DNA of 64,000 bases from Tubulanus polymorphus (Eukaryota; Animalia; Nemertea). A model generated the notes under the pieces. The model was not told where the DNA came from. It made no database searches and worked only from the letters and a program-made list of their open reading frames with translations. The stretch is from contig NC_134034.1 in the NCBI RefSeq assembly GCF_964204645.1, positions 6,794,914 through 6,858,913 of the forward strand, written 5' to 3'. The translations under genes and the position numbers were made by a program. The stretch's first letter is position 1. Each line of letters begins with the position of its first letter. This document shows, one piece after another, positions 27,271-64,000 of this stretch.

Positions 27271-27556
27271 TATAGTCGTCATGAACACCCGATTTGAATT
27301 CAAATTCAAAAGACTCCTAAAAACGCACCTGTTTACTCGATTACTGTAAAGATTACTTTGAGCATTTATATGCAAGAATCAGTGAAATTGGCGCTTTATC
27401 AGTTGTATTCATCATTCAAACCATTATTCTCCTTATCCTATGAATTTGGAGACCCATCCTTGCATGAGAATGAATATAATGTTATTTCAATTAAAGATGA
27501 CACATGGCCTCATATCATTACGTTATGTTTTTTAACGAGTGGGCGAGATTATATTT

Positions 27557-27863
27557 AGGGTTTTCTGTTGCTTCACAGAAAACCCTATTGAAATTCGCGT
27601 GATTATTATTAGGGTTTTCTGTTATTTCACAGAAAACCCTATTGATATCCGCGTGATTATTATTAGGGTTTTCTGTTATTTCACAGAAAACCCTATTGAT
27701 ATCCGCGTGATTATTAGGGTTTTTCTGTTATTTCACAGAAAACCCTATTGATATCCGCGTGATTATTAGGGTTTTCTGTTATTTCACAGAAAACCCTATT
27801 GATATCCGCGTGATTATTAGGGTTTTCTGTTATTTCACAGAAAACCCTATTGATATCCGCGTG
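27557..27863 (+). repeat. Six tandem 51-54-bp copies of the HINE-B 5' hairpin (two more at 42869-42965)
   Basis: agggttttctgttatttcacagaaaaccctattgatatccgcgtgattatt. Confidence 0.9.
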
Positions 27864-28046
27864 ATACTTATTATTATTATTTTCTTCCACACTATTTTTA
27901 CCAAAAGAACATAGGCTTTGTTACCTTACCGCTGTTTCATATACAATCCATATAATATCGTTCAGCTCACTGAGATCTACAAATAGCCCGCGTGTTTTTT
28001 CACGAATCATCGTTACAAAAGCGCTGTCGGGCCGTAAACATCGAAA

Positions 28047-28296
28047 GGACCAAGTACATTGAGAGAAAATTTTCAATTTATCCAAACCAGTATAAATTCT
28101 CCTCCCTTATGCAGACAAAAAACATCAGAACACTTTATAATTTATGTATCTTTATAAGTAAAATTGCTAAAATATTTGTGTAAACACGGCATTCGCTGCT
28201 ATGTTATTTTGTATAATGTTCTATTTTTCACTCATATTGTCTAATTTGTAGACCTTGAGTTTGTCAAATAAACTGTAAACTGTAAACTGTAAACTG
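28047..28296 (+). mobile_element. 5'-truncated non-LTR retroelement 3' end inserted in unit 1 only
   Basis: Absent from other units (catcgaaa|atttagcc); ends aataaa + (TAAACTG)n tail; possible gaaa TSD. Confidence 0.6.
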
Positions 28297-28920
28297 AAAA
28301 TTTAGCCCCATTCAATGGGGCGACATGTTTTTCGAGTCGTCATCCCGAAATCAACCCGCAGGCCGACTGTCACTTCGATTATCAATTCAAGTATAAATGA
28401 ACTAATTTATTGCCGCAGACTTCACATTCAGTCGCGGTCTTCAAACAGTGATTTTAACAATAGCCCATTTTCCTCATCAAATCATATTACCGATACACTG
28501 GAAATTTACTACTTTAGATTTTAAAAGCACTGTCGAGCCGTAAACATCGACGAATCGCGGTGTGTTACTACATCGTCGTTCCGGGGATCAGCTGCGAGTT
28601 TCTCGTCATCATGAACCTACGTGAAGTGAGCCTGTTACTCCAGCCTCGTATTTAGATATAGTGTGTATACACTGTACAGCTGCCTGTAGATACTGGTTGA
28701 CATGAAATGTATAACTTAGCATGACGGAGCGATGATAACTAACGTTAACGTTAGTATATAGCATCGGATACTGATACTCAAATTTCTCTGAAACAAAAAC
28801 TCCAGGTTTCGTAAAAACTGAGTATATTACTGAGTAGGCTCGATTGTTCAAGTAGATATATAAAGTAAATGTCTGTGCATCGATTTGTTCAGGTATTATT
28901 TCAACTCACGATTGCATCAT

Positions 28921-31419
28921 TCCGCGACAATTCAATATTTTGGTTTTGTCACTCGCGACAATTCATTATTTTGGTTTTATCGCCCGCGACAATTCAATAT
29001 TTTGGTTTTATCGCCCGCGATAATTCATTATTTTGGTTTTATCGCCCGCGACAATTCAATATTTCGTTTTTATCGCCCGCGACAATTCATTATTTTGGTT
29101 TTGTCGCCCCAGACCATTCATTATTTTGGTTTTATCGCCCGCGTCAATCCATTATTTTGGTTTTGTCGCCCGCGACAATTCATTATTTTGATTTTGTCGC
29201 CCGCGACGATTCAATATCTTGTTTTTGTCGCCCGAGACAATTCATTAGTTTGGTTTTATCGCCCGCGACAATTCATTAGTTTGGTTTTGTCGCCCGCGAC
29301 AATTCATTAGTTTGGTTTTGTCGCCCGCGACAATTCATTATTTTGGTTTTATCGCCCGCGACAATTCAATATTTTGGTTTTATCGCCCGCGATAATTCAT
29401 TATTTTGGTTTTATCGCCCGCGACAATTCAATATTTCGTTTTTATCGCCCGCGACAATTCATTATTTTGGTTTTGTCGCCCCAGACCATTCATTATTTTG
29501 GTTTTATCGCCCGCGTCAATCCATTATTTTGGTTTTGTCGCCCGCGACAATTCATTATTTTGATTTTGTCGCCCGCGACGATTCAATATCTTGTTTTTGT
29601 CGCCCGAGACAATTCATTAGTTTGGTTTTATCGCCCGCGACAATTCATTAGTTTGGTTTTGTCGCCCGCGACAATTCATTAGTTTGGTTTTGTCGCCCGC
29701 GACAATTCAATATTTTGGTTTTGTCGCCCGCGAAAATTCAATATTTTGGTTTTATCGCCCGCGACAATTCATTACTTAGGTTTTATCGCCACCGACAATT
29801 CATTATTTTGGTTTTGTCGCCCGCGACAATTCATTATTTTGGTTTTATATTTTGTTTTTGTCGCCCGCGACAATTTTCTTTTTTGGTTTTATCGCCTGCG
29901 ACAATTCAATATTTTTGTTTTATCGCCCGCGATTATTCATTAATTTGATTTTGTCGCCTGAGACAATTCATTATTTTGGTTTTATCGCCCGCGACAATTC
30001 ATTATTACGGTTTTATCGCCCGCGACAATTCATTATTTTGGTTTTGTCGCCCGCGACAATTAACCATTTTGGTTTTGTCGCCCGCGATAATTCACCATTT
30101 TGGTTTTGTCGCCCGCGAAAATTCAATATTTTGGTTTTATCGCCCGCGACAATTCATTACTTAGGTTTTATCGCCACCGACAATTCATTATTTTGGTTTT
30201 GTCGCCCGCGACAATTCATTATTTTGGTTTTATATTTTGTTTTTGTCGCCCGCGACAATTTTCTTTTTTGGTTTTATCGCCTGCGACAATTCAATATTTT
30301 TGTTTTATCGCCCGCGATTATTCATTAATTTGATTTTGTCGCCTGAGACAATTCATTATTTTGGTTTTATCGCCCGCGACAATTCATTATTACGGTTTTA
30401 TCGCCCGCGACAATTCATTATTTTGGTTTTGTCGCCCGCGACAATTAACCATTTTGGTTTTGTCGCCCGCGATAATTCACCATTTTGGTTTTGTCGCCAG
30501 CGACAATTCATTATTTTGGTTTTATCGCCTGCGACTATTCAATATTTTGTTTTTATCGCCCGCGACAATTCATTATTTTGGTTTTGTCGCCCGAGAACAT
30601 TCATTATTTTGGTTTTATCGCCTGCGTCAATTCATTATTTTGGTTTTGTCGCCCACGACAACTCATTATTTTGATTTTGTCGCCCGCGACGATTCAATAT
30701 CTTGTTTTTGTCGCCCGAGACAATTCATTATTTTGGTTTTATCGCCCGCGACAATTCATTATTTTGGTTTTATCGCCCGCGTCAATTCATTATTTTGGTT
30801 TTGTCGCCCGCGACAATTCATTATTTTGATTTTGTCGCCCGCGACGATTCAATATCTTGTTTTTGTCGCCCGAGACAATTCATTATTTTGGTTTTATCGC
30901 CCGCGACAATTCATTAGTTTGGTTTTATCGCCCGCGACAATTCATTATTTTGGTTTTGTCGCCCGAGACAATTCATAATTTTGGTTTAATCGCCCGCGAC
31001 AATTCAATATTTTGGTTTTATCGCCTGCGACAATTCATTATTTTGGTTTTATTGCCCGCGACAATTCAATATTTTGGTTTTATCGCCCGCGACAATTCAT
31101 TATTTTGGTTTTATATTTTGTTTTTATCGCCCGCGCCAATTTTTTTTTGGTTTTGTCGCCCGCGACAATTCAATATTTTGGTTTTGTCGCCCGCGACAAT
31201 TCATTATTTTGGTTTTATCGCCCGCAACAATTCAATATTTTGTTTTTATCGCCTGCGACGATTCAATATTTTGTTTTTGTCGCCCGAGACAATTCATGAT
31301 TTTGGTTTTATTGCCCGCGACAATTCAATATTTTTGTTTTATCGCCCGCGACAATTCATTAGTTTGGTTTTGTCGCCCGCGACAATTCAATATTTTGGTT
31401 TTGTCGCCCGCGACAATTA
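28921..31419 (+). repeat. 31-bp satellite block (ttttggtttt[g/a]tcgcccgcgacaattcatta)
   Basis: ~80 monomers; 372- and 385-bp higher-order duplications. Confidence 0.95.
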
Positions 31420-32838
31420 TTTTTCAGTCCACTTGGGACTTAAGTTCCAGCGGGCTATTGCGTTCACTTTTCTTCCGTCCGTCCGTCCATAGACGGAATC
31501 CAGTTATTTTGGGAAGTTTTGAAGACGCTTCAAGGTAATGTCTTGATATTTGGTTTATACATGTATCTACCCTAGACACATCGTCAGCCCAAAAACTAGC
31601 CCTGTCAGATTCAAGATGGCCGACTGGCAGCCATTGTTGTTTGCCAAAATCAGCACTTTTTAAACATTTTCGAAGTTTTCGTGGAAAATTTTGAAGACGC
31701 TTTGATCAATTACCTTGATGTTTCGTTTATATTTGAATCTACCAAAGGCCCATCAGCATAAGAAAATTGGGTCGATCTGACTCAAGATGGCCGTCCTATG
31801 ACCTTTTTAGTGCCCAAAAATGTCAATTTTGGCCAGAATTCTAGGTCACGTAGCTTCCTACTGGTTTGCCATTTCTCATTGCAATTGCTGATGGGCATTC
31901 TTTAGAGAGGGATGTTTTATTCCTGGGAAAGGTATCTTTGATCAGCCAATTATGACGCAATTGGCGGCCATCTTGGTGTCATCAGTACTCATTCGTAGGT
32001 GGGAAAAAGTTTTTCCACATTAAATTGATACCTTAGCATATTGTGTTACTATATTCAATTGGAAAGTTGTAGCCCATAACGTGTTCTATGATTTTGGTGA
32101 GTTTCAAGGTCATTGGTTTTAGTATGTGGCCATCAGGGGGCGTTGAATAATACAATAACTTAGTATTGCTATATTATATTTGTACCAAGGCATATTTTGT
32201 TACCATGATCAATTGCGAAGTTGTAGTTCATGACATCGTCTATGATTGTGGTGAGTTTTTAAGGACAATAAATATTCCATATAGTCACCAGGGGGCGTTG
32301 AATAGTAGAAAAGCTGAGTTTTTCCTTATTAGATTGGTACCTAGGCATAGTTTGTTACCATGATCCATTGCAAAGTTGTAGATCATGACATCGTCTATGA
32401 TTGTGGTGAGTTTTTAAGGACATTAGTTATTCCATATAGCCACCAGGGGGCGTTGAATAGTAGAATGGCTTAGTATTTCCTTATTAGATTGGTACCTAGG
32501 CATATTTTGGTACTATGATCAATTGCAAAGTTGTATTTCATGACAATTACTACAATTGTGGTGAGTTTTAAGGTCATTGGGTTTTGCATATGGTCACCAG
32601 GGGCGTTGAATAGTAGAATAACTTAGTATTTCCTTATTAAATTGGTAACGAGGCATATTTTGTTATCACAATCAATCACAAAATCATAGCTGCTCACATG
32701 TTCTATGATTGTGGTGGGTTTCAAGGTCATTGGTTTTTGTGTATGGTCACTAGAGGGCGTTGCGTATTGAAATTGTTAGATTGTTGAGCATTTGAAACCA
32801 CTTCCCAAGTGAGCATGGTGTCCCTGGACCCTTAGTTT
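31420..32838 (+). mobile_element. HINE-A complete copy inserted in a T-run of the satellite
   Basis: Reverse complement of 12628-14031 family; five ~154-bp repeats; satellite resumes 32839-33080. Confidence 0.85.
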
Positions 32839-33114
32839 GGTTTTGTCGCCCGCGACAATTCAATATTTTGTTTTTGTCGTCCGCGACAATTCAATATTTT
32901 GGTTTTAACGCCCGCGACAATTCATTATTGTGGTTTTATCGCCCGCGACAATTCATTATTTTGGTTTTATCGCCCTCGACAATTCATTATTTTTGTTTTG
33001 TCGCCCGTGACAATTCAATATTTTGGTTTTGTCACCCGCGACAATTCATAATTTTGGTTTTGTCCCCGTGGTTTTGTCGGAACATTAAGTTTTTTGGTCG
33101 AACAGTGTGGTAAG

Positions 33115-33400
33115 GTCGTTTTGGAAATTTACTCGGTCTGGTATCTTTTGGATTACTGTGTATGTCATTTGTCAGGACATTAAACAGAAGACGACTTAGG
33201 ATACTACCTTGCGTGACCCCACTAGTTAGACCGTCTCATTCCAAGATGAGGCGTTCCGTTGATTTCGGTTACAAGTTTCCGTTCAGAGATAACTGCTGAG
33301 CCATTTGGGCGACCTATCATTGATACTGTTTCCTAATAGCCTCTTTAGTAATGGCTGATGTTGAGCCTTATCAAATGCTTTGTTGAAATCCACCGTTGAA
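33115..33400 (-). pseudogene. Decayed CR1/L2-like reverse transcriptase fragment in HINE-B tail (also ~38025, 42530, 53290, 55548, 63408; partial 52655, 54915)
   Basis: Hand translation: VDFNKAFDKAQHQPLLKRL...KWLSSYL / ERK..EING / TSGVTQGSILSRLLFNVLTND. Confidence 0.8.
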
Positions 33401-34794
33401 CAGGATTCTAAGACTGTGCAGAAAACCCGTTATCGCTGCTTTGCAGCTATATTTATTATTATTATTTTCTTCCACACTATTTTTACCAAAAGAACATAGG
33501 CTTTGTTACCTTACCGCTGTTTCATATACAATCCATATAATATCGTTCAGCTCACTGAGATCTACAAATAGCCCCGCGTGTTTTTGCACAGAATCATCCT
33601 TACAAAAGCCTGTCGGGCCGTAAACATCGAAAATTAAGCCCCATTCAATGGATGTTTTTCAGAAGTCGTCTTTCCGAAATCTACCGCACGTTTCTTATCA
33701 CGTCGATCATCAATTCAAGCATAAATTAACAAATTTATTACCCAAAGATTGCACATTCAGTCGCAGTTTAAAAAAACTAATTTTTTTAATAGCCCATTTT
33801 CCTCATCAAATCATATTACCGATACACTGGAAATTTACTACTTTAGATTTTAAAAGCACTGTCGAGCCGTAAACATCGACGAATCGACGTGTGTTACTAC
33901 ATCGTCGTTCCGGGGATCAACTGCAAGTTTCTCCTCATCATGAGAATCAAATCGAGTACAAATTAATTTATTACTACCAGTGATTTGGCTGCGGGTTTCA
34001 AGGAGTTAGTATAACAATTCCTATTTTTCTTTACCGAATTAACCGTGTATTTACTAAGATAAATCTTTAGTGTACCGGGGAATCGTAGGCCTAAACTAAA
34101 CACGCCGAAGAAATATAGCGGAGAAAAGCTGTTATGTCGACGAGGTATCAAAATAAAAGAATATATTACTTTATTCGGCCGCGGGCTTCAACCTCTATAT
34201 CAATACCATCAATACTCTATATTTCCTACAGTACACACCGATCATTGTCAAATGCACAAGGTATTTACTAAATACAAGTATATAACACATAATCCTTTCC
34301 GTATGCTGGACTCACACTTGACATTCGGAGTAAGCGTTCGCTGTGGGGGAAAGGGATCGTTCGATGTGTCGCTTGAAGTGTTTATCGAGTTTGACGCGGC
34401 TTTAGGCCTACCGGTACTGAGCTTTACTGACTCAAACAAACACAGTACAATTGTTGCGTTTATTAACGGACTCATTGGATTGAACTTCAAAACAAAATTT
34501 ACCATATTTAGGTGGGTTGTTAAATTCAATAGGCCTACGACCAATCTGTCCGGATGTTAGGCCTACGCATATACAAAGGCCTACATAGGCTAGTAGCCTC
34601 TACTAGGTTAAGCGTTCGCTGTGGGGGAAAGGAGATCGTTCGCTGTGTCGCTTGAAGTGTTTATCGAGTTTTACGCGACCTTAAGGCTTTAGTGTGGTGG
34701 CTGATAAGGGCCATGCGTAAGAAAAACACGTATATGCAAATGAGGGCGACATTATGACAAAACGACAAAACTAAAATAACGCGACAAAACAATA

Positions 34795-36515
34795 ATTTTG
34801 GTTTTGTCGCCGGCGACAATTCCTTATTTTTGTTTTATCGCCCGCGACAATTCATTATTTTGGTTTTATCGCCCCCAACAATTCATTAGTTTGGTTTTGT
34901 CGCCCGCGACCATTCAAGATTTTGGTTTTTCTGCCGCGACAATTCATTTTTTGGATTTGTCGCCCGCGACAATTCAATATTTTGGTTTTGTCGCCCGCGC
35001 CAATTCATTATTTTGGTTTTATCGCCCGCGACAATTCATTAATTTGGTTTTATCGCCCGCGACAATTCATTATTTTGGTTTTATCGCCCGCGACAATTCA
35101 AGATTTTGGTTTTTCTGCCGCGACAATTCATTTTTTGGATTTGTCGCCCACGACAATTCAATATTTTGGTTTTATCGCCCGCGACAATTCATTATTTTGG
35201 TTTTATCGCCCGCGACAATTCATTAATTTGGTTTTGTCACCCGCGACGAAACAATATTTTGGTTTTGTCGCCCACGACAATTCAATAATTTGGTTTTATC
35301 GCCCACGACAATTCGTTATTTTGGTTTTATCACCCGCGACAATTCATTATTTTGGTTTTGTCGCACGCGACAATGGCGACAATTCAAGATTTTGGTTTTA
35401 TCGCCCGCGACAATTCATTTTTTGGTTTTATCGCCCACGACAATTCGTTATTTTGGTTTTATCACCCGCGACAATTCATTATTTTGGTTTTATCGCCCGC
35501 AACAATTTATTATTTTGGTTTTATCGCCCGCGACAATTCATTTTTTGGATTTGTCGCCCACGACAATTCAATATTTTGGTTTTATCGCCCGCGACAATTC
35601 ATTATTTTGGTTTTATCGCCCGCGACAATTTTTTTTTCTTTTTGTCGCGGTTTTATCGCCTGCGACACCTCAATATTTTGGTTTTATCGCCTGCGACAAT
35701 TCATTTTTTTGGTTTTATCGCCCGTGACAATTCATAAGTTTGGTTTAGTCGCCCGCGACAATTGAATATTTTGGTTTTGTCGCCCGCGACAATTCAATAT
35801 TTTGGTTTTATCGCCCGCGACAATTCATTTTTTTGGTTTTATCGCCTGCGACAATTTATTATTTTGGTTTTATCGCCCGCGACAATTCATTAGTTTGGTT
35901 TTGTCGCCAGCGACAATTGAATATTTTGTTTTTGTCGCCCGCGACAATTCATTATTTTGGTTTTATCACCCGCGACAATTCATTCTTTTGGTTTTGGCGC
36001 CCGCGACAATTCAATATTGTGGTTTTATCGCCAGCGACAACACATTATTTTGGTTTTATCGCCCACGACAATTGATTATTTTGGTTTTATCGCCCGCGAC
36101 AATTCATTATTTTGGTTTTGTCGCCCGCGACAATTCATTATTTTGGTTTTATATTTTGTTTTTGTCGCCCGCGACAATTCAATATTGTGGTTTTATCGCC
36201 AGCGACAATTCATTATTTTGGTTTTATCGCCCACGACAATTGATTATTTTGGTTTTATCGCCCGCGACAATTCATTATTTTGGTTTTGTCGCCCGCGACA
36301 ATTCAATATTTTGGTTTTATCGCCCGCGATAATTCATTATTTTGGTTTTGTCGCCCGAGACAATTCATTATTTTGGTTTTATCGCCCACGACAATTCATT
36401 TTTTTGGTTTTGTCGCCCGCGACAATTCAATATTTTGGTTTCATCGCCAGCGACAATTGATTATTTTGGTTTTATCGCCCGCGACAATTAATTTTTTGGT
36501 TTTGTCGCCCACATT
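34795..36515 (+). repeat. 31-bp satellite block
   Basis: Same monomer. Confidence 0.95.
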
Positions 36516-36602
36516 ATTAGCTTTTGAATAATTAGGCCAATTAATAATGTAATAAAGACTTATGCTTTCGCCCATTTTGAAGTCGATTAATGTGATATAG
36601 TA

Positions 36603-37014
36603 CGGAAGCGATAAAGGGCCTCGAGTTGTCGCGTTCAAACTCAACAAGTCGCCATATTTATGTCGATATATCGCGATATATCGTGTCAAGTCCACATGAA
36701 TATGTCTACATATCGTGACGTTTTCACGACAAATTTCGCTTATTTGCTCATTTTCCACGGGACAAGCCGTCATTTGAAGACATGTCTAAATGTAAGATGA
36801 GGACGCCAGTAATATGACGACTGAGTTTCAAGTCGTCATGAATATGTCGACTTGTCGCGAGGAAAGTGGTCGTGAAAACGAAATATGTCGTCAAAACGTC
36901 ACGATATATCGACATATTCATGTCGACTTGACGCGATATTTCGCGGTATGTCGACAATAATATGGCGACTTGTCGAGTTGGAACGCGTCATCTCGAGGCC
37001 CCTTATCGCTTCCG
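36603..37014. mobile_element. TA-flanked MITE with ~135-bp TIRs (second partial copy from ~37113)
   Basis: ta-cggaagcgataaagggcctcgag ... ctcgaggccccttatcgcttccg-ta. Confidence 0.8.
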
Positions 37015-52318: not shown

Positions 52319-55300
52319 GGCTTTGTCGCCCGCGACAATTCATTATTTTGGTTTTGTCGCACGCAACGATTCAATAGTTTGTTTTTGTCGTCCGCGACAA
52401 TTCATTATTTTGGTTTTATCGCCCGCAACAATTCAATATTTTGGTTTTAACGCCCGCGACAATTCATTATTGTGGTTTTATCGCCCGCGACAATTCATTA
52501 TTTTGGTTTTATCGCCCGCGACAATTCATTATTTTTGTTTTGTCGCCCGTGACAATTCAATATTTTGGTTTTGTCACCCGCGACAATTCATAATTTTGGT
52601 TTTGTCACCCGTGGTTTTGTCGGAACATTAAGTTTTTGGTCGAACAGTGTGTTAAGGTTGTTTTGGAAATTTACTCGGTCTGGTATATTTTGGATTACTG
52701 TGTATGTCATTTGTCAGGACATTAAACAGAAGACGACTTAGGATACTACCTTGCGTGACTCCACTAGTTAGACCGTCTCATTCCAAGATGAGGCGTTCCG
52801 TTGATTTCGGTTACAAGTTTCCGTGGTGGGTTTCAAGGTCATTGGTTTTTGTATATGGTCACTAGAGGGCGTTATGTAATGAAATTGTTAGATTGTTGAG
52901 CATTTTTAACCACTGCCCAAGTGAGCATGGTGTCCCTGGACCCCTAGTTTGGCTTTGTCGCCCGCGACAATTCATTATTTTGGTTTTGTCGCACGCAACG
53001 ATTCAATAGTTTGTTTTTGTCGTCCGCGACAATTCATTATTTTGGTTTTATCGCCCGCAACAATTCAATATTTTGGTTTTAACGCCCGCGACAATTCATT
53101 ATTGTGGTTTTATCGCCCGCGACAATTCATTATTTTGGTTTTATCGCCCGCGACAATTCATTATTTTTGTTTTGTCGCCCGTGACAATTCAATATTTTGG
53201 TTTTGTCACCCGCGACAATTCATAATTTTGGTTTTGTCACCCGTGGTTTTGTCGGAACATTAAGTTTTTGGTCGAACAGTGTGTTAAGGTTGTTTTGGAA
53301 ATTTACTCGGTCTGGTATATTTTGGATTACTGTGTATGTCATTTGTCAGGACATTAAACAGAAGACGACTTAGGATACTACCTTGCGTGACTCCACTAGT
53401 TAGACCGTCTCATTCCAAGATGAGGCGTTCCGTTGATTTCGGTTACAAGTTTCCGTTCAGAGATAACTGCTGTGCCATTTGGGCGACCTATCATTGATAC
53501 TGTTTCCTAATAGCCTGTTCAGTAATGGCTGATGTTGAGTCTTATCAAATGCTTTGTTGAAATCCACCGTTGAACAGGATTCTAAGACTGTGCAGAAAAC
53601 CCGTTATCGTTGCTTTGCAGCTATATTTATTATTATTTTCTTCCACACTATTTTTACCAAAAGAACATAGGCTTTGTTACCTTAACGCTGTTTCATATAC
53701 AATCCATATAATATCGTTCAGCTCACTGAGATCTACAAATAGCCCGCGTGTTTTTTCACGAATCATCGTTACAAAAGCGCTGTCGTGCCGTAAACATCGA
53801 AAATTTAGCCCCATTCAATGGGGCGACATGTTTTTCGAGTCGTCATCCCGAAATCAACCCGCAGGCCGACTGTCACTTCGATTATCAATTCAAGTATAAA
53901 TGTACTAATTTATTGCCGCAGACTTCAAATTCAGTCGCGGTCTTCAAACAGTGATTTTAACAATAGCCCATTTTCCTCATCAAATCATATTACCGATTCA
54001 CTGGAAATTTACTACTTTAGATTTTAAAAGCACTTTCGAGCCGTAAACATCGACGAATCGACGTGTGTTACTACATCGTCGTTCCGGGTATCAGCTGCGA
54101 GTTTCTCCTCATCATGAGAATCAAATCGAGTACAAATTAATTTATTACTACCAGTGATTTGGCTGCGGGTTTCAAGGAGTTAGTTTAACAATACCTATTT
54201 TTCTTTACCGAATTAACCGTGTATTTACTAAGATAAATCATAAGTGTACCGGGGAGTCGTAGGCCTAAACTAAACACGCCGAAGAGATATAGCGGAGAAA
54301 AGCTGTTATGTCGACGAGGTATCAAAATAAAGAAATATATTACTTTATTCGGCCGCGGCCCTCTATATCAATACCATCAATACTCTATATTTCCTACAGT
54401 ACATACCGATCATTGTCGAATCCACAAGGTATTTACTAAATACAAGTATATAACACACTCCTATCCGTATGCTGGACTCACACTTGACATTCGGAGTAAG
54501 CGTTCGCTGTGGGGGAAAGGAGATCGTTCGCTGTGTCGCTTGAAGTGTTTATCGAGTTTTACGCGACATTAAGGCTTTAGTATGGTGGCTGATAAGATAA
54601 AAAAAACACGAATATGCAAATGAGGGCGACATTACGACAAAACTAAAATAACGCGAGAAAACAATGATTTTGGTTTTGTCACACGTGACAATTCAATATT
54701 TTGGTTTATCGCCCGCGACAATTCATTATTTTGGTTTTGTCGCCCCGACAATTCATTATTTTGGTTTTATCGCCCGCGACAATTCATTATTTTTGTTTTG
54801 TCGCCCGTGACAATTCAATATTTTGGTTTTGTCACCCGCGACAATTCATAATTTTGGTTTTGTCACCCGTGGTTTTGTCGGAACATTAAGTTTTTGGTCG
54901 AACAGTGTGTTAAGGTTGTTTTGGAAATTTACTCGGTCTGGTATATTTTGGATTACTGTGTATGTCATTTGTCAGGACATTAAACAGAAGACGACTTAGG
55001 ATACTACCTTGCGTGACTCCACTAGTTAGACCGTCTCATTCCAAGATGAGGCGTTCCGTTGATTTCGGTTACAAGTTTCCGTGGTGGGTTTCAAGGTCAT
55101 TGGTTTTTGTATATGGTCACTAGAGGGCGTTATGTAATGAAATTGTTAGATTGTTGAGCATTTTTAACCACTGCCCAAGTGAGCATGGTGTCCCTGGACC
55201 CCTAGTTTGGCTTTGTCGCCCGCGACAATTCATTATTTTGGTTTTGTCGCACGCAACGATTCAATAGTTTGTTTTTGTCGTCCGCGACAATTCATTATTT

Positions 55301-56924
55301 TGGTTTTATCGCCCGCAACAATTCAATATTTTGGTTTTAACGCCCGCGACAATTCATTATTGTGGTTTTATCGCCCGCGACAATTCATTATTTTGGTTTT
55401 ATCGCCCGCGACAATTCATTATTTTTGTTTTGTCGCCCGTGACAATTCAATATTTTGGTTTTGTCACCCGCGACAATTCATAATTTTGGTTTTGTCACCC
55501 GTGGTTTTGTCGGAACATTAAGTTTTTGGTCGAACAGTGTGTTAAGGTTGTTTTGGAAATTTACTCGGTCTGGTATATTTTGGATTACTGTGTATGTCAT
55601 TTGTCAAGACATTAAACAGAAGACGACTTAGGATACTACCTTGCGTGACTCCACTAGTTAGACCGTCTCATTCCAAGATGAGGCGTTCCGTTGATTTCGG
55701 TTACAAGTTTCCGTTCAGAGATAACTGCTGTGCCATTTGGGCGACCTATCATTGATACTGTTTCCTAATAGCCTGTTCAGTAATGGCTGATGTTGAGTCT
55801 TATCAAATGCTTTGTTGAAATCCACCGTTGAACAGGATTCTAAGACTGTGCAGAAAACCCGTTATCGTTGCTTTGCAGCTATATTTATTATTATTTTCTT
55901 CCACACTATTTTTACCAAAAGAACATAGGCTTTGTTACCTTAACGCTGTTTCATATACAATCCATATAATATCGTTCAGCTCACTGAGATCTACAAATAG
56001 CCCGCGTGTTTTTTCACGAATCATCGTTACAAAAGCGCTGTCGTGCCGTAAACATCGAAAATTTAGCCCCATTCAATGGGGCGACATGTTTTTCGAGTCG
56101 TCATCCCGAAATCAACCCGCAGGCCGACTGTCACTTCGATTATCAATTCAAGTATAAATGTACTAATTTATTGCCGCAGACTTCAAATTCAGTCGCGGTC
56201 TTCAAACAGTGATTTTAACAATAGCCCATTTTCCTCATCAAATCATATTACCGATTCACTGGAAATTTACTACTTTAGATTTTAAAAGCACTTTCGAGCC
56301 GTAAACATCGACGAATCGACGTGTGTTACTACATCGTCGTTCCGGGTATCAGCTGCGAGTTTCTCCTCATCATGAGAATCAAATCGAGTACAAATTAATT
56401 TATTACTACCAGTGATTTGGCTGCGGGTTTCAAGGAGTTAGTTTAACAATACCTATTTTTCTTTACCGAATTAACCGTGTATTTACTAAGATAAATCATA
56501 AGTGTACCGGGGAGTCGTAGGCCTAAACTAAACACGCCGAAGAGATATAGCGGAGAAAAGCTGTTATGTCGACGAGGTATCAAAATAAAGAAATATATTA
56601 CTTTATTCGGCCGCGGCCCTCTATATCAATACCATCAATACTCTATATTTCCTACAGTACATACCGATCATTGTCGAATCCACAAGGTATTTACTAAATA
56701 CAAGTATATAACACACTCCTATCCGTATGCTGGACTCACACTTGACATTCGGAGTAAGCGTTCGCTGTGGGGGAAAGGAGATCGTTCGCTGTGTCGCTTG
56801 AAGTGTTTATCGAGTTTTACGCGACATTAAGGCTTTAGTATGGTGGCTGATAAGATAAAAAAAACACGAATATGCAAATGAGGGCGACATTACGACAAAA
56901 CTAAAATAACGCGAGAAAACAATG

Positions 56925-59900
56925 ATTTTGGTTTTGTCACACGTGACAATTCAATATTTTGGTTTATCGCCCGCGACAATTCATTATTTTGGTTTTGTCG
57001 CCCCGACAATCCTTTTTTTGCTTTTGTCGCCCGCGACAATTCATAAGTTTGGTTTTGTCGCCCGCGACAATTCAATATTTTGGTTTTGTCGCCCGCGACA
57101 ATTCAATATTTTGGTTTTATCGCCCGCGACAATTCATTGTTTTGGTTTTATCGCCCGCGACAATTCACCATTTTGGTTTTGTCGCCTGGACAATTCACCA
57201 TTTTGGTTTTGTCGCCCGCGACAATTCATTATTTTGGTTTTGTCGCCCCGACAATTCTTTTTTGGTTTTGTCGCCCGCGACAATTCATTAGTTATGTTTT
57301 GTCATCCGCGACAATTCAATATTTTGGTTTTATCGCCCACGACAATTCATTACTTTGGTTTTATCTCCAGCGACAATTCATTATTGTAGCTTTATATTTT
57401 GTTTTTGTCGCCCGCGACAATTTTTTTGTTTGTATTTTCGCCCGCGACAATTCAATATTTTGGTTTTATCGCCCGCGACAATTCAATATTTTGGTTTTAT
57501 CGCCTGCCATAATTCATTATTTTGGTTTTATCGCCTGCGACAATTCAATATTTTGTTTTAATCGCCCGTCACAATTCATTATTTTGTGGTTTTGTCGCCC
57601 GAGACCATTCATTATTTTGGTTTTATCGCCCGCGACAATTCATTATTTTGGTTTTGTCGCCTGAGACCATTCATTATTTTGGTTTTATCGCCCGAGACAA
57701 TTCAATATTTTGGTTTTATCACCCGCGACGATTCATTACTTTGGTTTTATCTCCAGCGACAATTCATTTTTTTGGTTTTGTCGCCCGTGACAATTCATTA
57801 TTTTGGTTTTGTCGCACGTGACAATTCAATATTTTGTTTTTGTCGCCCGAGACAATTCATTAGTTTGGTTTTATTGCCCGCGACAATTCATTATTTTGGT
57901 TTTGTCGCCCGCGACAATTCTTCTTTTTGGTTTTGTCGCCCACGACAATTCATTAGTTTGGTCTTTTCACCCGCGACAATTCAATATTTTGGTTTTGTCG
58001 CCCGTGAAAATTCAATATTTTGGTTTTATCGCCCACGACAATTCATTACTTTTTATCTCCAGCGACAATTCATTATTTTGGTTTTGTCGCCCGCGACAAT
58101 TCTTCTTTTTTGGTTTTGTCGCCTGCGACAATTCATTATTTTGGTTTTATATTTTGTTTTTGTCGCGCGCAACATTTTTTTTTGGTTTTGTTGCCCGCGA
58201 CAATTCATTATTTTGGTTTTATCGCCCGCGACAATTCAATATTTTGGTTTTATGGCCTGCGATAATTCATTATTTTGGTTTTATCGCCCGCGACAATTCA
58301 TTATTTTGGTTTTATCGCCCGCGACAATTCACCATTTTGGTTTTGTCGCCTGGACAATTCACCATTTTGGTTTTGTCGCCCGCGACAATTCATTATTTTG
58401 GTTTTGTCGCCCCGACAATTCATTAGTTTGGTCTTTTCACCCGCGACAATTCAATATTTTGGTTTTGTCGCCCGTGAAAATTCAATATTTTGGTTTTATC
58501 GCCCACGACAATTCATTACTTTTTATCTCCAGCGACAATTCATTATTTTGGTTTTGTCGCCCGCGACAATTCTTCTTTTTTGGTTTTGTCGCCTGCGACA
58601 ATTCATTATTTTGGTTTTGTCGCCCGCGACAATTCATTATTTTGGTTTTGTCGCCCCGACAATTCTTTTTTGGTTTTGTCGCCCGCGACAATTCATTAGT
58701 TATGTTTTGTCATCCGCGACAATTCAATATTTTGGTTTTATCGCCCACGACAATTCATTACTTTGGTTTTATCTCCAGCGACAATTCATTATTGTAGCTT
58801 TATATTTTGTTTTTGTCGCCCGCGACAATTTTTTTGTTTGTATTTTCGCCCGCGACAATTCAATATTTTGGTTTTATCGCCTGGACAATTCAATATTTTG
58901 GTTTTATCGCCTGCCATAATTCATTATTTTGGTTTTATCGCCTGCGACAATTCAATATTTTGTTTTAATCGCCCGTCACAATTCATTATTTTGTGGTTTT
59001 GTCGCCCGAGACCATTCATTATTTTGGTTTTATCGCCCGCGACAATTCATTATTTTGGTTTTGTCGCCTGAGACCATTCATTATTTTGGTTTTATCGCCC
59101 GAGACAATTCAATATTTTGGTTTTATCACCCGCGACAATTCATTACTTTGGTTTTATCTCCAGCGACAATTCATTTTTTTGGTTTTGTCGCCCGTGACAA
59201 TTCATTATTTTGGTTTTGTCGCACGTGACAATTCAATATTTTGTTTTTGTCGCCCGAGACAATTCATTAGTTTGGTTTTATTGCCCGCGACAATTCATTA
59301 TTTTGGTTTTGTCGCCCGCGACAATTCTTCTTTTTGGTTTTGTCGCCCACGACAATTCATTAGTTTGGTCTTTTCACCCGCGACAATTCAATATTTTGGT
59401 TTTGTCGCCCGTGAAAATTCAATATTTTGGTTTTATCGCCCACGACAATTCATTACTTTTTATCTCCAGCGACAATTCATTATTTTGGTTTTGTCGCCCG
59501 CGACAATTCTTCTTTTTTGGTTTTGTGGCCTGCGACAATTCATTATTTTGGTTTTATATTTTGTTTTTGTCGCGCGCAACATTTTTTTTTGGTTTTGTTG
59601 CCCGCGACAATTCATTATTTTGGTTTTATCGCCCGCGACAATTCAATATTTTGGTTTTATGGCCTGCGATAATTCATTATTTTGGTTTTATCGCCCGCGA
59701 CAATTCATTATTTTGGTTTTGCCGCCTGAGAAAATTCATTATTTTGGTTTTATCGCCCACGACAATTCATTATTTTTGTTTTATCGCCCGCGACAATTCA
59801 TTATTTTGGTTTTGTCGCCCGCGACAATTCACCATTTTGGTTTTGTCGCCCGCGACAATTCATTAGTTATGTTTTGTCATCCGCGACAATTCAATATTTT

Positions 59901-61697
59901 GGTTTTATCGCCCACGACAATTCATTACTTTGGTTTTATCTCCAGCGACAATTCATTATTGTAGCTTTATATTTTGTTTTTGTCGCCCGCGACAATTTTT
60001 TTGTTTGTATTTTCGCCCGCGACAATTCAATATTTTGGTTTTATCGCCTGGACAATTCAATATTTTGGTTTTATCGCCTGCCATAATTCATTATTTTGGT
60101 TTTATCGCCTGCGACAATTCAATATTTTGTTTTAATCGCCCGTCACAATTCATTATTTTGTGGTTTTGTCGCCCGAGACCATTCATTATTTTGGTTTTAT
60201 CGCCCGCGACAATTCATTATTTTGGTTTTGTCGCCTGAGACCATTCATTATTTTGGTTTTATCGCCCGAGACAATTCAATATTTTGGTTTTATCACCCGC
60301 GACAATTCATTACTTTGGTTTTATCTCCAGCGACAATTCATTTTTTTGGTTTTGTCGCCCGTGACAATTCATTATTTTGGTTTTGTCGCACGTGACAATT
60401 CAATATTTTGTTTTTGTCGCCCGAGACAATTCATTAGTTTGGTTTTATTGCCCGCGACAATTCATTATTTTGGTTTTGTCGCCCGCGACAATTCTTCTTT
60501 TTGGTTTTGTCGCCCACGACAATTCATTAGTTTGGTCTTTTCACCCGCGACAATTCAATATTTTGGTTTTGTCGCCCGTGAAAATTCAATATTTTGGTTT
60601 TATCGCCCACGACAATTCATTACTTTTTATCTCCAGCGACAATTCATTATTTTGGTTTTGTCGCCCGCGACAATTCTTCTTTTTTGGTTTTGTGGCCTGC
60701 GACAATTCATTATTTTGGTTTTATATTTTGTTTTTGTCGCGCGCAACATTTTTTTTTGGTTTTGTTGCCCGCGACAATTCATTATTTTGGTTTTATCGCC
60801 CGCGACAATTCAATATTTTGGTTTTATGGCCTGCGATAATTCATTATTTTGGTTTTATCGCCCGCGACAATTCATTATTTTGGTTTTGCCGCCTGAGAAA
60901 ATTCATTATTTTGGTTTTATCGCCCACGACAATTCATTATTTTTGTTTTATCGCCCGCGACAATTCATTATTTTGGTTTTGTCGCCCGCGACAATTCACC
61001 ATTTTGGTTTTGTCGCCCGCGACAATTCATTTTTTTTGATTTTGTCGCCCCGACAATTCTTTTTCTGGTTTTATCACCCGCGACAATTCATTACTTTGGT
61101 TTTATCTCCAGCGACAATTCATTATTTTGGTTTTGTCTCCCGCGACAATTCATTATTTTGGTTTTATATTTTGTTTTTGTCGCCCGCGACAATTCACTAT
61201 TTTGATTTTATATTTTGTTTTTGTCGCCCGCGACAATTCATTATTTTGGTTTTGTCGCACGAGACAATTCATTATTTTGGTTTTATCGCCCGCAACAATT
61301 CATTATTTTGGTTTTATCGCCCTCGACAATTCATTATTTTGGTTTTGTCGCACGAGACAATTCATTATTTTGGTTTTGTCGCACCTGACAATTCAATATT
61401 TTGTTTTTGTCGCCCGAGACAATTTATTATTTCGGTTTTATCGCCCGCGACAATTCAATATTTTTGTTTGATCGCCCGCGACAATTCATAGTTTGGTTTT
61501 ATCGCCCGCGACAATTCATTAGTCTGGTTTTGTCGCCCGCGACAATTCAATATTTTTGTTTTATCGCCCGCGACAATTCATATTTTTATCGCCCCCGACA
61601 ATTCATTAGTTTGGTTTTGTCGCCCGTGACAATTCAATATTTTGGTTTTATCACCCGCGACAATTCATTAGTTTGGTTTTGTCGCCCGCGACAATTC
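56925..61697 (+). repeat. 31-bp satellite block with ~1.17-1.41-kb higher-order repeats
   Basis: ORF offsets 1407 (57522/58929) and 1167 (58929/60096, 59427/60594). Confidence 0.95.
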
Positions 61698-63096
61698 TTT
61701 TTCAGTCCACTTGGGACTTTAGTCCCAGCGGGCTATTGCGTTCACTTTTCGTCCGTCCATCCATCCATAGACGGAATCCAGTTATTTCGGGAAGTTTTGA
61801 AGACGCTTCAAGGTAATGTCTTGATATTTGGTTTATACATGTATCTACCCTAGACACATCGTCAGCCCAAAAACTGGCCCTGTCAGATTCAAGATGGTCG
61901 ACTGGCAACCATTGTTGTTTGCCAAAATCAGCACTTTTTAAACATTTTCGAAGTTTTCGTGGGAAATTTTGAAGACGCTTTGATCAATTACCTTGATCTT
62001 TCGTTTATATTTGAATCTACCAAAGGCCCATCAGCATAAGAAAATTGGGTCGATCTGACTCAAGATGGCCGTCCTATGACCTTTTTAGTGCCCAAAAATG
62101 TCAATTTTGGCCAGAATTCTAGGTCCTGTAGCGTCCTACTGGTTTGCCAATTCTCATTGCAATTGCTGATGGGTATTCTTTAGAGAGGGATGTTTTATAC
62201 CTGGGACAGGTTTTTTGATCAGCCAATTATGACGCAATTGGCGGCCATCTTGGTGTCATCATTACACATTCGTAGGTGGGAAAAAGTTTTTCCACATTAA
62301 ATTGATACCTAAGCATATTGTGTTACTATATTCAATTGGAAAGTTGTAGCCCATAACGTGCTCTATGATTTTGGTGAGTTTCAAGGTCATTGGTTTTTGT
62401 ATGTGGCCATCAGGGGGCGTTGAATAATACAATAACTTAGTATCGCTATATTATATTTGTACCAAGGCATATTTTGTTACCATGATCAATTGCAAAGTTG
62501 TAGTTCATGACATCTTCTATGATTGTGGTGAGTTTTTAAGGACATTAGTTATTCCATATAGATACCAGGGGGCGTTGAATAGTAGAAAAGCTTAGTTTTT
62601 CCTTATTAGATTGGTACCTAGGCATAGTTTGTTACCATTATCCATTGCAAAGTTGTAGTTCATGACATCGTCTATGATTGTGGTGAGCTTTTAAGGACAT
62701 TAGTTATTCCATATAGTCACAAGGGGGGGCTGAATAGTAGAATGGCTTAGTATTTCCTTATTAGATTGGTACCTAGGCATATTTTGTTACTATGATCAAT
62801 TGCAAAGTTGTATTTCATTACATGTACTACGATTGTGGTGAGTTTTAAGGTCATTGGGTTTTGCATATGGTCACCAGGGGGCGTTGAATAGTAGAATAAC
62901 TTAGTATTTCCATATTAAATTGGTAACGAGGCATATTTTGTTATCACAATCAATTACAAAATCAAAGCTGCTCACATGTTCTATGATTGTGGTGGTTTTC
63001 AAGGTCATTGGTTTTTGTATATGGTCACTAGAGGGCGTTATGTATTGAAATCGTTAGATTGTTGGATGGAGCATGGTGTCCCTGGACCCCTAGTTT
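61698..63096 (+). mobile_element. HINE-A complete copy
   Basis: Both termini, five repeats; short satellite to ~63370. Confidence 0.85.
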
Positions 63097-64000
63097 GGTT
63101 TTGTCGCCCTCGACAATTCATTATTTTGGTTTTGTCGCACGCAACAATTCAATATATTGTTTTTGCCGTCCGCGACAATTCATTACTTTGGTTTTATCGC
63201 CCGCGACAATTCATTATTGTGGTTTTATCTCCCGCGAAAATTCATTATTTTGGTTTTATCGCCCGCGACAATTCATTATTTTTGTTTTGTCGCTCGTGAC
63301 AATTCAATATTTTGGTTTTGTCACCCGCGACAATTCATAATTTTGGTTTTGTCGCCCGTGGTTTTGTCGGAACATTAAGTTTTTTGGTCGAACAGTGTGT
63401 TAAGGTCGTTTTGGAAATTTACTCGGTCTGGTATATTTTGGATTACTGTGTATGTCATTTGTCAGGACATTAAACAGAACACGACTTAGGATACTACCTT
63501 GCGTTACTCCACTAGTTAGACCGTCTCATTCCAAGATGAGGCGTTCCGTTGATTTCGGTTACAAGTTTCCGTTCAGAGATAACTGCTGAGCCATTTGGGC
63601 GACCTATCATTGATACTGTTTCCTAATAGCCTGTTTAGAATGGCTGATGTTGAGCCTTATCAAATGCTTTGTTGAAATCCACCGTTGAACAGGATTCTAA
63701 GACTGTGCAGAAAACCCGTTATCGCTGCTTTGCAGCTATATTTATTTATTTTTTTTCCCTTTTCCACATAGTTTTTGTTAAAAGTGTAAAGGCTTCCTTA
63801 CCTTACCGCTGTCGCCGATACAATCCGTATGATATCCTTCAGCTCACTTCAATCTCCAGATACTGCATGGGAATTTTGATAAATCCACGTTATTGTAACC
63901 GGGTGAACTTGTAGGGGAAACCGTTCTCCAGAACCCCGAAATCGATCGGTTGCTGTCATTCGATAGAGGAAAAAAGGCCGGTCACATTATAAAGGCACTG

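Follow-up and report, generated by a model that had tools for sequence, protein, structure and literature searches.

DINE-TR1 of Drosophila is a HINE-type element whose central tandem repeats have expanded to satellite-like arrays in heterochromatin. HINE or DINE-1 elements are non-autonomous Helentrons (Thomas, Vadnagara and Pritham 2014, PMC4067079), and passages of the same paper cite tandem arrays of Helitrons in bat and silkworm. Maize has Helitrons with multiple termini, which are ascribed to the nesting of one Helitron in another (Dong et al. 2011, PMC3288121).

How transposon-borne tandem repeats turn into long satellite arrays is an open question, for which the locus described here offers a testable route. 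It lies in a window (the whole stretch of 64,000 nucleotides that was analysed) of the ribbon worm Tubulanus polymorphus, a species for which a literature search returned no paper on its transposons, and the family concerned would be the first Helentron-type non-autonomous family described in ribbon worms. All results refer to a single genome assembly.

Structure and dispersal of the repeating unit

The repeating unit of the array is a recently active, non-coding and non-autonomous transposon of the Helentron type that resembles HINE/DINE-1. Its 5′ side consists of at least one 51-bp hairpin unit (a 5′ subterminal repeat and its inverted partner), an (ATT)n tract and a head of 0.8-1.3 kb. The middle is a 31-bp central satellite that is split by a nested element with 155-bp repeats, termed B, and continues for ~300 bp behind it, and the 3′ side comprises a tail with an antisense fragment of a LINE reverse transcriptase (RT), a 3′ subterminal repeat, a 5-bp stem-loop and CTATAT. 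In the copies that were read the 5′ subterminal repeat AGGGTTTTCTG begins two bases after the flank, within the 2-4 nt that characterise HINEs, and its partner CAGAAAACCCT lies 8 nt beyond it, giving a 13-bp stem of -11.9 kcal/mol (z -6.4, DNA fold). The microsatellite behind the hairpin is (ATT)3-5, and the central repeats between head and tail are satellite blocks of 0.7-4.8 kb. The 3′ repeat CAGAAAACCC is an inverted copy of the 5′ GGGTTTTCTG, complementary at 10 of 11 positions, and is followed at 6-8 nt from the end by a GCTGC-TTT-GCAGC stem-loop, which was judged to agree with the palindrome of 5-10 bp that HINEs have 8-35 bp from their 3′ end. By folding alone this stem is not significant (z -1.0), yet it is identical in three families with unrelated upstream sequence.

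The unit has no coding capacity, as the only open frames of at least 150 aa in the array traverse satellite and all that the tail contains is a broken, RT-like antisense fragment (Pfam RVT_1, E 0.063), which is 42% identical (E 2e-6) to a bona fide RVT_1 ORF of the same genome. Element B, with its 5′ hairpin and T-rich ends, may itself be a nested HINE.

AGGG has TT ahead of it at almost every 5′ flank that was read, and CTATAT is followed by TT in five of six dispersed copies, in agreement with the HINE pattern of insertion at TT in T-rich DNA with two or more Ts at either boundary. A paralogous empty site is found in the 5′ region of a third family, which is uninterrupted in loci L022 and L033 (..GTAATTCTG.., with a single TT) and elsewhere harbours a 5.46-kb copy of a second HINE family, A2 (..GTAATT-element-TTCTG..), with TT on both sides and otherwise unchanged. 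TT on both flanks fits a 2-bp duplication equally well as an insertion between two Ts, and such a duplication is indistinguishable from Ts that are part of the element, as is likewise the case in the literature.

The family transposes as a whole unit to TT sites and consequently transports practically all of the 31-bp satellite in the genome; the total is ~1.2 Mb, nearly all of it cargo of this HINE-type family. Solitary copies of 3.7-5.9 kb with the same part order and ~98-99% identity are present on many chromosomes; five of them (L001-L004 and L006) are 98-99% identical with unrelated flanks on either side, and L008 has the same part order with its 3′ end abutting an A2 body. The shared 3′ terminus, taken as a 34-mer, occurs 1,560 times genome-wide (reversed control, 0) and closes families whose upstream sequence is unrelated. 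An initial annotation of the window had proposed a large, cargo-loaded unit of the HINE type that acts as a satellite amplifier. Termini and part order indeed match the HINE/DINE-1 layout, both termini are found together on dispersed copies, which sit at TT sites that are otherwise unaltered, and the element spreads the satellite; the cargo-bearing form is found genome-wide, which runs counter to the possibility, raised at the time, that it exists only here.

Layout of the array

The array occupies 27554-63743 and consists of six head-to-tail modules, all closed by one common 3′ terminus. By motif scan the copies of this terminus end at 33452, 38362, 42866, 53626, 55884 and 63741, which sets the lengths of modules 1-6 at 5.9, 4.9, 4.5, 10.8, 2.3 and 7.9 kb. 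The 31-bp satellite forms 13 blocks in the window, 18.9 kb altogether, and Rfam gave no match in the window. The features are listed below in window coordinates.

27554..27610, + strand: 5′ end of the host element, a T run and an A2 hairpin unit (A2 body resumes at 63742)
27611..27873, + strand: five stacked standard hairpin units of 51-54 bp, 13-bp stem, ATT units after each (TRF, motif scan, DNA fold)
27874..33452, + strand: module 1, A-short subfamily, head like dispersed copies
27874-28921, + strand: module 1 head, with a private 249-bp insert at 28047-28295
28922-31424, + strand: module 1 satellite
31425-32831, + strand: module 1 full 155-bp-repeat element B
32832-33068, + strand: module 1 short satellite
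33069-33452, + strand: module 1 tail C
33453..38362, + strand: module 2, A-long subfamily, closest relatives on C5 and C3
33453-34779, + strand: module 2 head
34780-36510, + strand: module 2 satellite
36511-37986, + strand: module 2 foldback-like foreign segment in place of B, with internal inverted repeats
37987-38362, + strand: module 2 tail
38363..42866, + strand: module 3, standard, by head identity to copies on other chromosomes
38363-39410, + strand: module 3 head
39411-41031, + strand: module 3 satellite
41032-42185, + strand: module 3 B, 5′-truncated
42186-42484, + strand: module 3 short satellite
42485-42866, + strand: module 3 tail
42867..42971, + strand: two standard hairpin units right behind the sole precise 3′-to-5′ junction
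42972..53626, + strand: module 4, two bodies fused, with truncated-B and full-B junction types both present
42972-44011, + strand: module 4 head
44012-47164, + strand: module 4 satellite, first block
47165-48001, + strand: module 4 truncated-B fragment
48002-51167, + strand: module 4 satellite, second block
51168-52312, + strand: module 4 full B
52199-53456, + strand: module 4 short satellite, partial tail and B end, duplicated with a 632-bp period (98.7% identity)
End at 53626, + strand: module 4 tail
53627..55884, + strand: module 5, product of a local 2.26-kb tandem duplication, short satellite recombined with long satellite (self-comparison)
55885..63741, + strand: module 6, a 96-97% lineage of the standard head
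55885-56921, + strand: module 6 head
56922-61697, + strand: module 6 satellite
61698-63090, + strand: module 6 full B
63091-63358, + strand: module 6 short satellite
63359-63741, + strand: module 6 tail
63742..64000, + strand: interrupted A2-family HINE body, by identity to A2 heads, running beyond the window

With the A2 unit included, the hairpin stack at the left edge measures 6.0-6.3 copies (TRF). The window holds seven standard hairpins, five stacked at the left edge and two in mid-array, for six inferred bodies. The leftmost variant (loop GTTGCTTCAC, spacer ATTGAAATTCGCGTG) is the one that stands directly 5′ of A2 bodies in solitary copies (L026, L027, L029 and L030). At the opposite edge the sixth tail, ending at 63741, joins an A2 body and not flanking DNA, so that the structure extends past 63743 and off the window. 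The ~149 bases at 63746-63893 match numerous A2 heads (836 candidates) at 99% identity, and in uninterrupted A2 copies such sequence directly follows the A2 hairpin. The array splits its A2 host, leaving the A2-type hairpin at its left and the A2 body behind its last tail, parts that are contiguous in solitary A2 copies. L008 is a second case of an A2-nested arrangement.

Junctions and relationships among the modules

At 42866/42867 a tail (..GCAGCTATAT) is followed by TT and then by the hairpin (AGGGTTTTCTG..), a precise join that the initial annotation had correctly placed within 42836-42900. It had also described all other junctions as passing from the tail straight to (ATT)n, which is true of four of them and not of the sixth tail, with its A2 neighbour. 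The precise 3′-to-5′ join is thus present at one of six junctions and the hairpin is absent from the remaining five. The precise 31-nt tail-to-hairpin junction occurs 69 times genome-wide and the tail-to-(ATT)n junction 299 times. In a genome-wide pattern count the tail led directly to an (ATT)n-head in 108 cases and to the inverted equivalent in 0; exact hairpin-to-hairpin joins number 197 and joins of a hairpin to an inverted tail 0.

The heads fall into three subfamilies and are not one common head, and those of neighbouring modules are 73-99% identical to each other. More than 35 dispersed copies, none with the 249-bp insert, match the head of module 1 at 98-99% identity, and module 2, which lacks the 155-bp-repeat element, shares 95-96% identity with its C5 and C3 relatives as against 89-93% with its neighbours; modules 1 and 2 are of different subfamilies with their nearest relatives elsewhere. 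The head of module 3 shares 98.0-98.7% identity with copies located on other chromosomes and 98.5% with the head of module 4, so these two modules are as close to one another as to such copies. Between modules 5 and 6 head identity reaches 99.93-100% and, this pair excepted, neighbouring modules are no closer mutually than to copies on other chromosomes. Module 4 contains truncated-B and full-B junction types, which are markers of different subfamilies. Judged from their sequences, the modules of the array represent at least four sublineages. Of the first description, six head-to-tail modules with a common 3′ terminus remain, as do the satellite block, the RT-fragment tail and the 3′ subterminal repeat with its stem-loop; the single shared head has to be given up, module 2 is without B, module 4 is fused and module 5 is a local duplicate.

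A circular intermediate or bypassed 3′ termination could yield a rolling-circle concatemer that is integrated or amplified as one unit, and the 42866/42867 junction is exactly the 3′-to-5′ join expected of a circle or tandem copy. Its 69 recurrences and the constant-period arrays of 5.85 and 7.45 kb on C2 and C7, which look like segmental or rolling-circle amplification, point the same way, and published work has put tandem arrays of Helitrons down to bypassed termination (PMC4067079). For the present array, however, such a concatemer is largely refuted and very unlikely, as its units are not near-identical and not every junction is the precise join. Modules are of different subfamilies, modules 1 and 2 are nearest to copies on other chromosomes, the hairpin is missing from five of the six junctions, and neither copying nor bypass predicts that hairpins are stacked on the left or that the A2 host is split. 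It may be inferred with good support that the 36-kb locus was not copied from one unit.

Local unequal exchange

A constant period and mutual closest relatives, as expected of unequal exchange, are seen for sub-parts of the array only and not for the whole. These sub-parts are the 2.26-kb duplication, for which self-comparison of 52404-54869 with 54664-57126 gives 98.9% identity over 2466 bp, the 632-bp duplication (98.7%) and multi-monomer duplications in the satellite blocks. Local unequal exchange between satellite blocks duplicated the 2.26-kb and 632-bp segments and fused two bodies, and it also lengthened satellite blocks to 3-4.8 kb. The original proposal that one unit was amplified by rolling-circle replication or unequal exchange therefore survives in part: it fails for the array as a whole, given the mix of subfamilies, the single precise junction, the A2 nesting and the left-edge hairpin stack, and unequal exchange stands for module 5, the 632-bp duplication and the growth of the satellite.

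The entire locus could also be purely recombinational in origin: dispersed copies and their microsatellites would have undergone unequal crossing-over, ectopic recombination or gene conversion, and the junctions without hairpins would stem from deletion between flanking ATT repeats. The demonstrable local exchange (duplications of 2.26 kb and 632 bp, the fusion in module 4 and the multi-monomer satellite duplications) speaks for this, as do the excess of body-body over hairpin-hairpin joins and the fact that hairpin units are themselves tandem repeats prone to slippage. Such an origin is nevertheless unlikely, since the precise paralogous empty site marks a true insertion at such a position and the A2 host is split at a single point, its halves otherwise intact and in register with the ATT units. 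Slippage cannot yield stacks that mix hairpins from different families, and for recombination alone to bring four lineages to one relative site in a common orientation, many double events would have had to coincide.

Proposed origin by nested insertion

It is probable that the array arose by serial nested insertion, in one orientation, into hairpin-adjacent (ATT)n, and that local unequal exchange then modified it. Six or more separate insertions, drawn from four or more sublineages, would have built it; the first would have gone into an older HINE of the second family, A2, and most of the insertions into the (ATT)n tract just 3′ of the hairpin of a resident element. With each insertion, the hairpin would join the stack on the left and the body the head-to-tail row on the right, and because just one of the two strands of (ATT)n offers TT, a newcomer can insert in one orientation only. 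The sole precise tail-to-hairpin junction would fit an insertion at the TT bordering a resident copy, and unequal exchange between satellite blocks would have reshaped the array afterwards. The hairpin-adjacent tract is perhaps favoured as a built-in cluster of preferred A-TT sites, which may be exposed or bound at the hairpin.

A similar order is found at L033, which has three hairpins (one degenerate) and then three bodies. The predicted equality of hairpin-hairpin and body-body joins is not clean: genome-wide, exact joins of the former kind number 197 and those of the latter at least 299, and an array on C3 has three hairpins ahead of four bodies, a body count suggested by coordinates, so hairpin slippage or loss, or body duplication, must act too. 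Three loci (L005-L007) are solitary copies with 2-3 hairpins, and stacks can therefore also arise or travel without nested bodies.

With more than 1,000 near-identical copies in the family and satellite blocks that are hard to assemble, reads from many dispersed copies might have been mis-joined or mis-expanded. An assembly artefact of this sort is very unlikely, as subfamily-specific structures and private insertions set the modules apart, the same architecture is found at independent loci (L008, L023+L031 and L033) and the two flanks are the two halves of one A2 element.

If nested insertion is taken further, the family may home to itself, its own hairpin-adjacent (ATT)n serving as a preferred landing pad for one orientation that gives ordered, last-in, first-out arrays without rolling-circle concatemerisation and then seeds complex satellites in pericentromere-like domains; this extension is plausible and put forward tentatively.

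Search for an autonomous partner

Autonomous Helentrons encode Rep, a helicase and usually an APE endonuclease. An ORF of 1830 aa on C8 that combines Rep, PIF1 and Exo_endo_phos is a true Rep-helicase-APE Helentron gene; the 4.5 kb upstream of it is a different high-copy repeat and its sole close copy is a segmental duplicate. The HINE hairpin and termini were not found in the flanks of four Rep/Hel genes on C4, C3, C1 and C8 (3-4.5 kb for two and 5-10 kb for two). A further 53 canonical 3′ termini have no tail sequence ahead of them, and not one of the 58 Rep or 75 PIF1 matches is situated less than 15 kb away from any of these. Neither the flank readings nor this proximity scan thus yielded an autonomous partner that shares the termini. 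Long ORFs spanning 11.8 kb behind the 5′ end of the third family (L031 and L032) were considered as a partner and rejected, since they show neither a Rep nor a helicase motif and gave nothing useful in Pfam or PDB; ARAGORN detected tRNA in neither L031 nor L033.

Comparison with known systems

In DINE-TR1 the expansion is of the internal repeat itself, whereas the present array is mainly a row of whole elements in which growth of the internal satellite is secondary. With HINE/DINE-1 (PMC4067079) the element shares its general layout: on the 5′ side a subterminal repeat that starts two bases in and has an inverted partner nearby, then a microsatellite and central tandem repeats, and on the 3′ side another subterminal repeat and, behind it and close to the terminus, a short palindrome. 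The two also have in common Ts at both boundaries, a TT target that is otherwise unchanged, high copy number and clustering in heterochromatin-like domains. Unlike HINE/DINE-1 the present element is much larger, at 3.7-5.9 kb for a single copy with a fixed cargo of satellite, nested repeat-bearing element and LINE fragment, its hairpin units are stacked and about a quarter of its 3′ ends abut another copy. Partners at 95-98% identity were found in that study (PMC4067079), whereas no terminus-sharing partner was identified for the present family.

Cg_HINE of the Pacific oyster (Vojvoda Zeljko et al. 2020, PMC7492417) likewise has HINE substructures and central repeats that are satellite DNAs dispersed by the element, and as with Cg_HINE the present satellite is essentially only HINE cargo. 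The microsatellites of Cg_HINE are mostly of a 4-nt GTCY type, in contrast to the TT-bearing ATT tract here, and its host belongs to a different phylum; the words "nested" and "inserted into" are absent from that paper, and "head-to-tail" is used only in a general definition of satellite DNA.

The Helitrons of maize, bat and silkworm resemble the present locus, according to excerpts of the respective accounts (PMC3288121, PMC4067079), in having several 5′ or 3′ ends per locus, owing to element-into-element insertion and later mobilisation from an outer end, and in placing distantly related elements side by side. They are canonical Helitrons with an AT target, 5′ TC and 3′ CTAG, and neither a microsatellite landing site that fixes position and orientation nor hairpins stacked in order next to bodies in a head-to-tail row are mentioned in those passages.

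The route suggested here is that a HINE takes the 31-bp satellite to more than 1,000 sites and appears to pile onto itself at one spot and in one orientation, the satellite growing by unequal exchange. As the array appears to have been built by one-orientation self-insertion, head-to-tail arrays of rolling-circle elements need not be products of rolling-circle replication, and stacked 5′ hairpins together with a mix of subfamilies distinguish nested insertion from a rolling-circle origin. If self-homing were general, head-to-tail arrays of Helitrons and Helentrons that have been ascribed to termination bypass may share this origin, with a stack of 5′ ends as the diagnostic feature.

Organisation of the array

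The array occupies 27554-63743 of the window (contig C10, 6794914-6858913) and is composed of six head-to-tail modules, numbered here 1 to 6 from left to right. Tandem Repeats Finder and a consensus mask place 13 blocks of the 31-bp satellite (18.9 kb in total) and five blocks of a 155-bp repeat in the window, and self-comparison with the satellite masked recovers a recurring order of parts: one or more hairpin units, an (ATT)n tract, a head (A), a long satellite, an element that bears the 155-bp repeats (B), about 300 bp of satellite and a 382-bp tail (C). The landmarks are as follows.

27543-27873, 51/54-bp hairpin repeat (Tandem Repeats Finder and consensus mask)
42867-42971, 51/54-bp hairpin repeat (Tandem Repeats Finder and consensus mask)
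3' terminus, six copies ending at 33452, 38362, 42866, 53626, 55884 and 63741 (motif scan)

The six modules with common parts described in the initial annotation are thus borne out, with corrections, by the six 3' termini and the order of parts. The precise tail-to-head join that it placed near 42836-42900 is present at 42866/42867, the one junction of six where tail, TT and hairpin meet exactly. It had all the other tails running straight into (ATT)n, which holds for four of the six junctions but not for the last, where the tail leads into a head that is related to, yet distinct from, those of the array.

The repeating unit is a dispersed transposon

The unit that repeats in the array is a transposon. 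Searches of the 268-Mb assembly (77 contigs) gave 2,441 first-look candidates for a head-plus-tail query and 1,106 for the tail only, in both cases on many chromosomes and at 95-100% identity. Six copies among eight fetched loci could be read from the hairpin to the 3' terminus, and these share an identical order of parts over 3.7-5.9 kb, with heads that are 98-99% identical and flanks that are unrelated except in L008, one of the six, whose 3' end adjoins the body of a second HINE family, A2. The nested B and the split satellite are common to all copies, and the composite therefore has a single origin and was dispersed whole. In the genome, 1,560 sites match the 34-base 3' terminus at up to 3 mismatches, against 0 for a reversed control. 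On the 32-Mb contig C1, 54 of the 59 exact copies fall within 11.3-20.2 Mb, a central domain of pericentromere-like character.

Ends and target site

The 5' end consists of TT, AGGGTTTTCTG, an 8-nt spacer and CAGAAAACCCT, and folds into a 13-bp hairpin (-11.9 kcal/mol, z -6.4). The 3' end carries CAGAAAACCC, an inverted copy of the 5' repeat, followed after seven bases by a GCTGC-TTT-GCAGC stem-loop, then TATAT and then TT. The short 3' stem is not significant on folding alone (z -1.0); the entire 3' terminus is identical across three families with unrelated upstream sequence. A paralogous empty site is provided by the 5' region of the third HINE family, which reads ..GTAATTCTG.. without interruption in L022 and L033, and its filled counterpart (L023 and L031) reads ..GTAATT, a 5.46-kb element, TTCTG... 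A single TT at the empty site corresponds to a TT on either side of the element at the filled one, and nothing else differs.

Modules of different descent

The proposal that the array is a concatemer of one unit does not hold, as the modules stem from different lineages.

Module 1: short-head subfamily with a private 249-bp insert; 98-99% identical to more than 35 dispersed copies
Module 2: long-head subfamily; 95-96% identical to copies on C5 and C3, against 89-93% to its neighbours
Modules 3 and 4: standard; 98.0-99.1% identical to copies on other chromosomes and 98.5% to each other
Modules 5 and 6: a 96-97% lineage of the standard head; mutually identical

Truncated and full B junctions mark different subfamilies and are both present in module 4, which is therefore a fusion of two bodies. 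In module 2, B and the short satellite are replaced by a 1.5-kb foldback-like segment with long internal inverted repeats (36511-37986), which was seen in none of the other copies read.

Probable assembly by nested insertion

The leftmost hairpin (27557) is of the A2 type and not the standard one, and an A2 body resumes at 63742 behind the last tail. Since A2 hairpin and A2 body are contiguous in the solitary copies L026, L027, L029 and L030, the whole array has an A2 element around it and occupies the ATT tract of that element; the same layout is seen at L008. Module 1 is separated from the A2 hairpin by five standard hairpins, and two more stand before module 4, giving seven against six inferred bodies. 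Elements inserting one after another immediately 3' to a resident hairpin would pile hairpins at the left and queue bodies at the right, and it is most likely that the array was built in this manner. At locus L033, three bodies follow three hairpins, of which one is degenerate. Slippage cannot account for the hairpin stacks of L022-L024 and L033, because they mix hairpins of different families. Of the 100 hairpin-to-hairpin spacers listed, about 96 consist of complete ATT units.

Orientation is absolute in the joins counted across the genome, with 108 direct joins of tail to (ATT)n and head against 0 inverted, and 197 hairpin-to-hairpin joins against 0 of hairpin to inverted tail. TT is confined to one strand of (ATT)n, and a single orientation would therefore follow if integration needs TT on the strand of the element. 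Genome-wide, 299 of the 1,560 3' ends adjoin an (ATT)n head and 69 a hairpin; these frequencies suggest a preference for the hairpin-adjacent tract.

Secondary changes

The array, whose structure is taken from a single assembly, has also been altered by later events. Segment 52404-54869 is repeated at 54664-57126 (98.9%), a duplication that produced module 5 through exchange between short and long satellite. A shorter segment, 52199-52824, is repeated at 52823-53456 (98.7%), and multi-monomer duplications occur inside satellite blocks (e.g. 48064-49928 and 49307-51150, 94%). The blocks reach 3.2-4.8 kb in the array, compared with 0.7-2.7 kb for complete blocks in the other copies read.

The balance of hairpins and bodies is imperfect: exact hairpin-hairpin joins number 197 and body-body joins at least 299. 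One array on C3 has three hairpins ahead of what are, judging from coordinates, four bodies, and some solitary copies carry two or three hairpins. Two further arrays of the same HINE (G000:C2:10635414-10664705 and G000:C7:11230000-11263493) have, judging from coordinates, strictly constant periods of about 5.85 kb and of 7.45 kb, the latter with two 3' ends per period, and have the look of segmental or rolling-circle amplification, not of serial insertion. Taken together, the imperfect balance, the multi-hairpin solitary copies and the constant periods indicate that gain or loss of hairpins and duplication of bodies also act, and perhaps genuine tandem amplification is at work as well.

The cargo

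The 31-bp satellite is essentially HINE-borne. The genome contains 12,948 occurrences of a satellite 16-mer and the 18.9 kb of the window contains 197, which scales to about 1.2 Mb of satellite (0.46% of the genome), roughly the load of 1,000-1,500 HINE copies, and the first 100 satellite sites listed all lie, by eye, a few kb from listed 3' termini; the conclusion follows from this amount and this proximity. The label of "satellite amplifier" given to the element is fair in the sense of dispersal.

The tail carries on its minus strand a broken reverse transcriptase (RT) fragment that reaches only E 0.063 against Pfam, and is 42% identical (E 2e-6) to the corresponding motif in an authentic RVT_1 ORF of the same genome.

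Independent copies of B, 84-88% identical to the nested B and with shared boundaries, are present in the window.

1124-2567, minus strand, independent B copy
9948-10447, minus strand, independent B copy
12622-14036, minus strand, independent B copy

The B element has a 5' hairpin and T-rich ends, and may itself be another HINE-like or Helitron-like non-autonomous family. The independent copies have a T run and 14-bp palindrome at the start and ..CTAG/TTAG, then TTT, at the end; their repeats are of 154/155 bp, and B is the element nested in every HINE copy.

Rolling-circle genes and other coding elements

The genome contains 58 Rep and 75 PIF1 matches. No HINE termini were found near Rep/Hel genes among those whose flanks were read, and no Rep/Hel genes within 15 kb of 53 3' termini outside the tail context. 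Contig C8 encodes a bona fide Rep-helicase-APE ORF of 1830 aa, an open Helentron-type gene (G000:C8:2675042-2680532, its 3' part being L037) that reads through Rep, PIF1 helicase and an APE-type endonuclease without a change of frame. The one close copy of this gene (100%) lies within a segmental duplication at C8:4.22-4.24 Mb, and its other relatives are 70-83% identical. The 4.5 kb just upstream (L036, G000:C8:2669500-2673999) is a young, high-copy repeat, found full-length at 99% on at least 10 other contigs, at none of which it lies beside a Rep match.

A second type of rolling-circle transposase gene is an open 2009-aa ORF at G000:C3:12179780-12185806 (L019:4781-10000 into L020:1-807) that joins an N-terminal OTU-like protease, DUF6570, Helitron Rep and PIF1 helicase, without an endonuclease. 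Downstream of the 5' end of the third HINE family, G000:C9:7449191-7460975 (L031:6812-10000, L032:1-8596) holds 11.8 kb of long same-strand ORFs (814, 541, 252, 435, 453, 415 and 329 aa) rich in K, I and N. This large element or gene cluster matches only a weak Endonuclease_7 (E 3e-6) and a zinc-finger-like stretch, and contains no Rep, helicase or Walker A motif. Within the window, the minus strand of 4258-9396 is GC-rich (about 50% GC against 38% around it) and has several long ORFs, one with an RNase H domain of the RT-associated kind (E 1.4e-6); the stretch is probably what is left of an LTR-retrotransposon pol gene.

Comparison with known elements

The ends and target features of the family agree point by point with the published definition of HINE/DINE-1 elements (PMC4067079), and likewise with the Cg_HINEs of the oyster and their satellite-like repeats (PMC7492417). 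As no partner with HINE termini was found among the Rep/Hel genes covered, it is on structure that the family is placed, as a putative member, in the Helentron group. HINEs with satellites (PMC7492417), nested Helitrons that give rise to multiple termini (PMC3288121) and clusters and tandem arrays of Helitrons (PMC4067079) are all known already. What is new here is the size of the element and its fixed composite cargo, the near-total capture of a satellite by a HINE, and the probable building of arrays at the microsatellite beside the element's own hairpin, in one orientation only.
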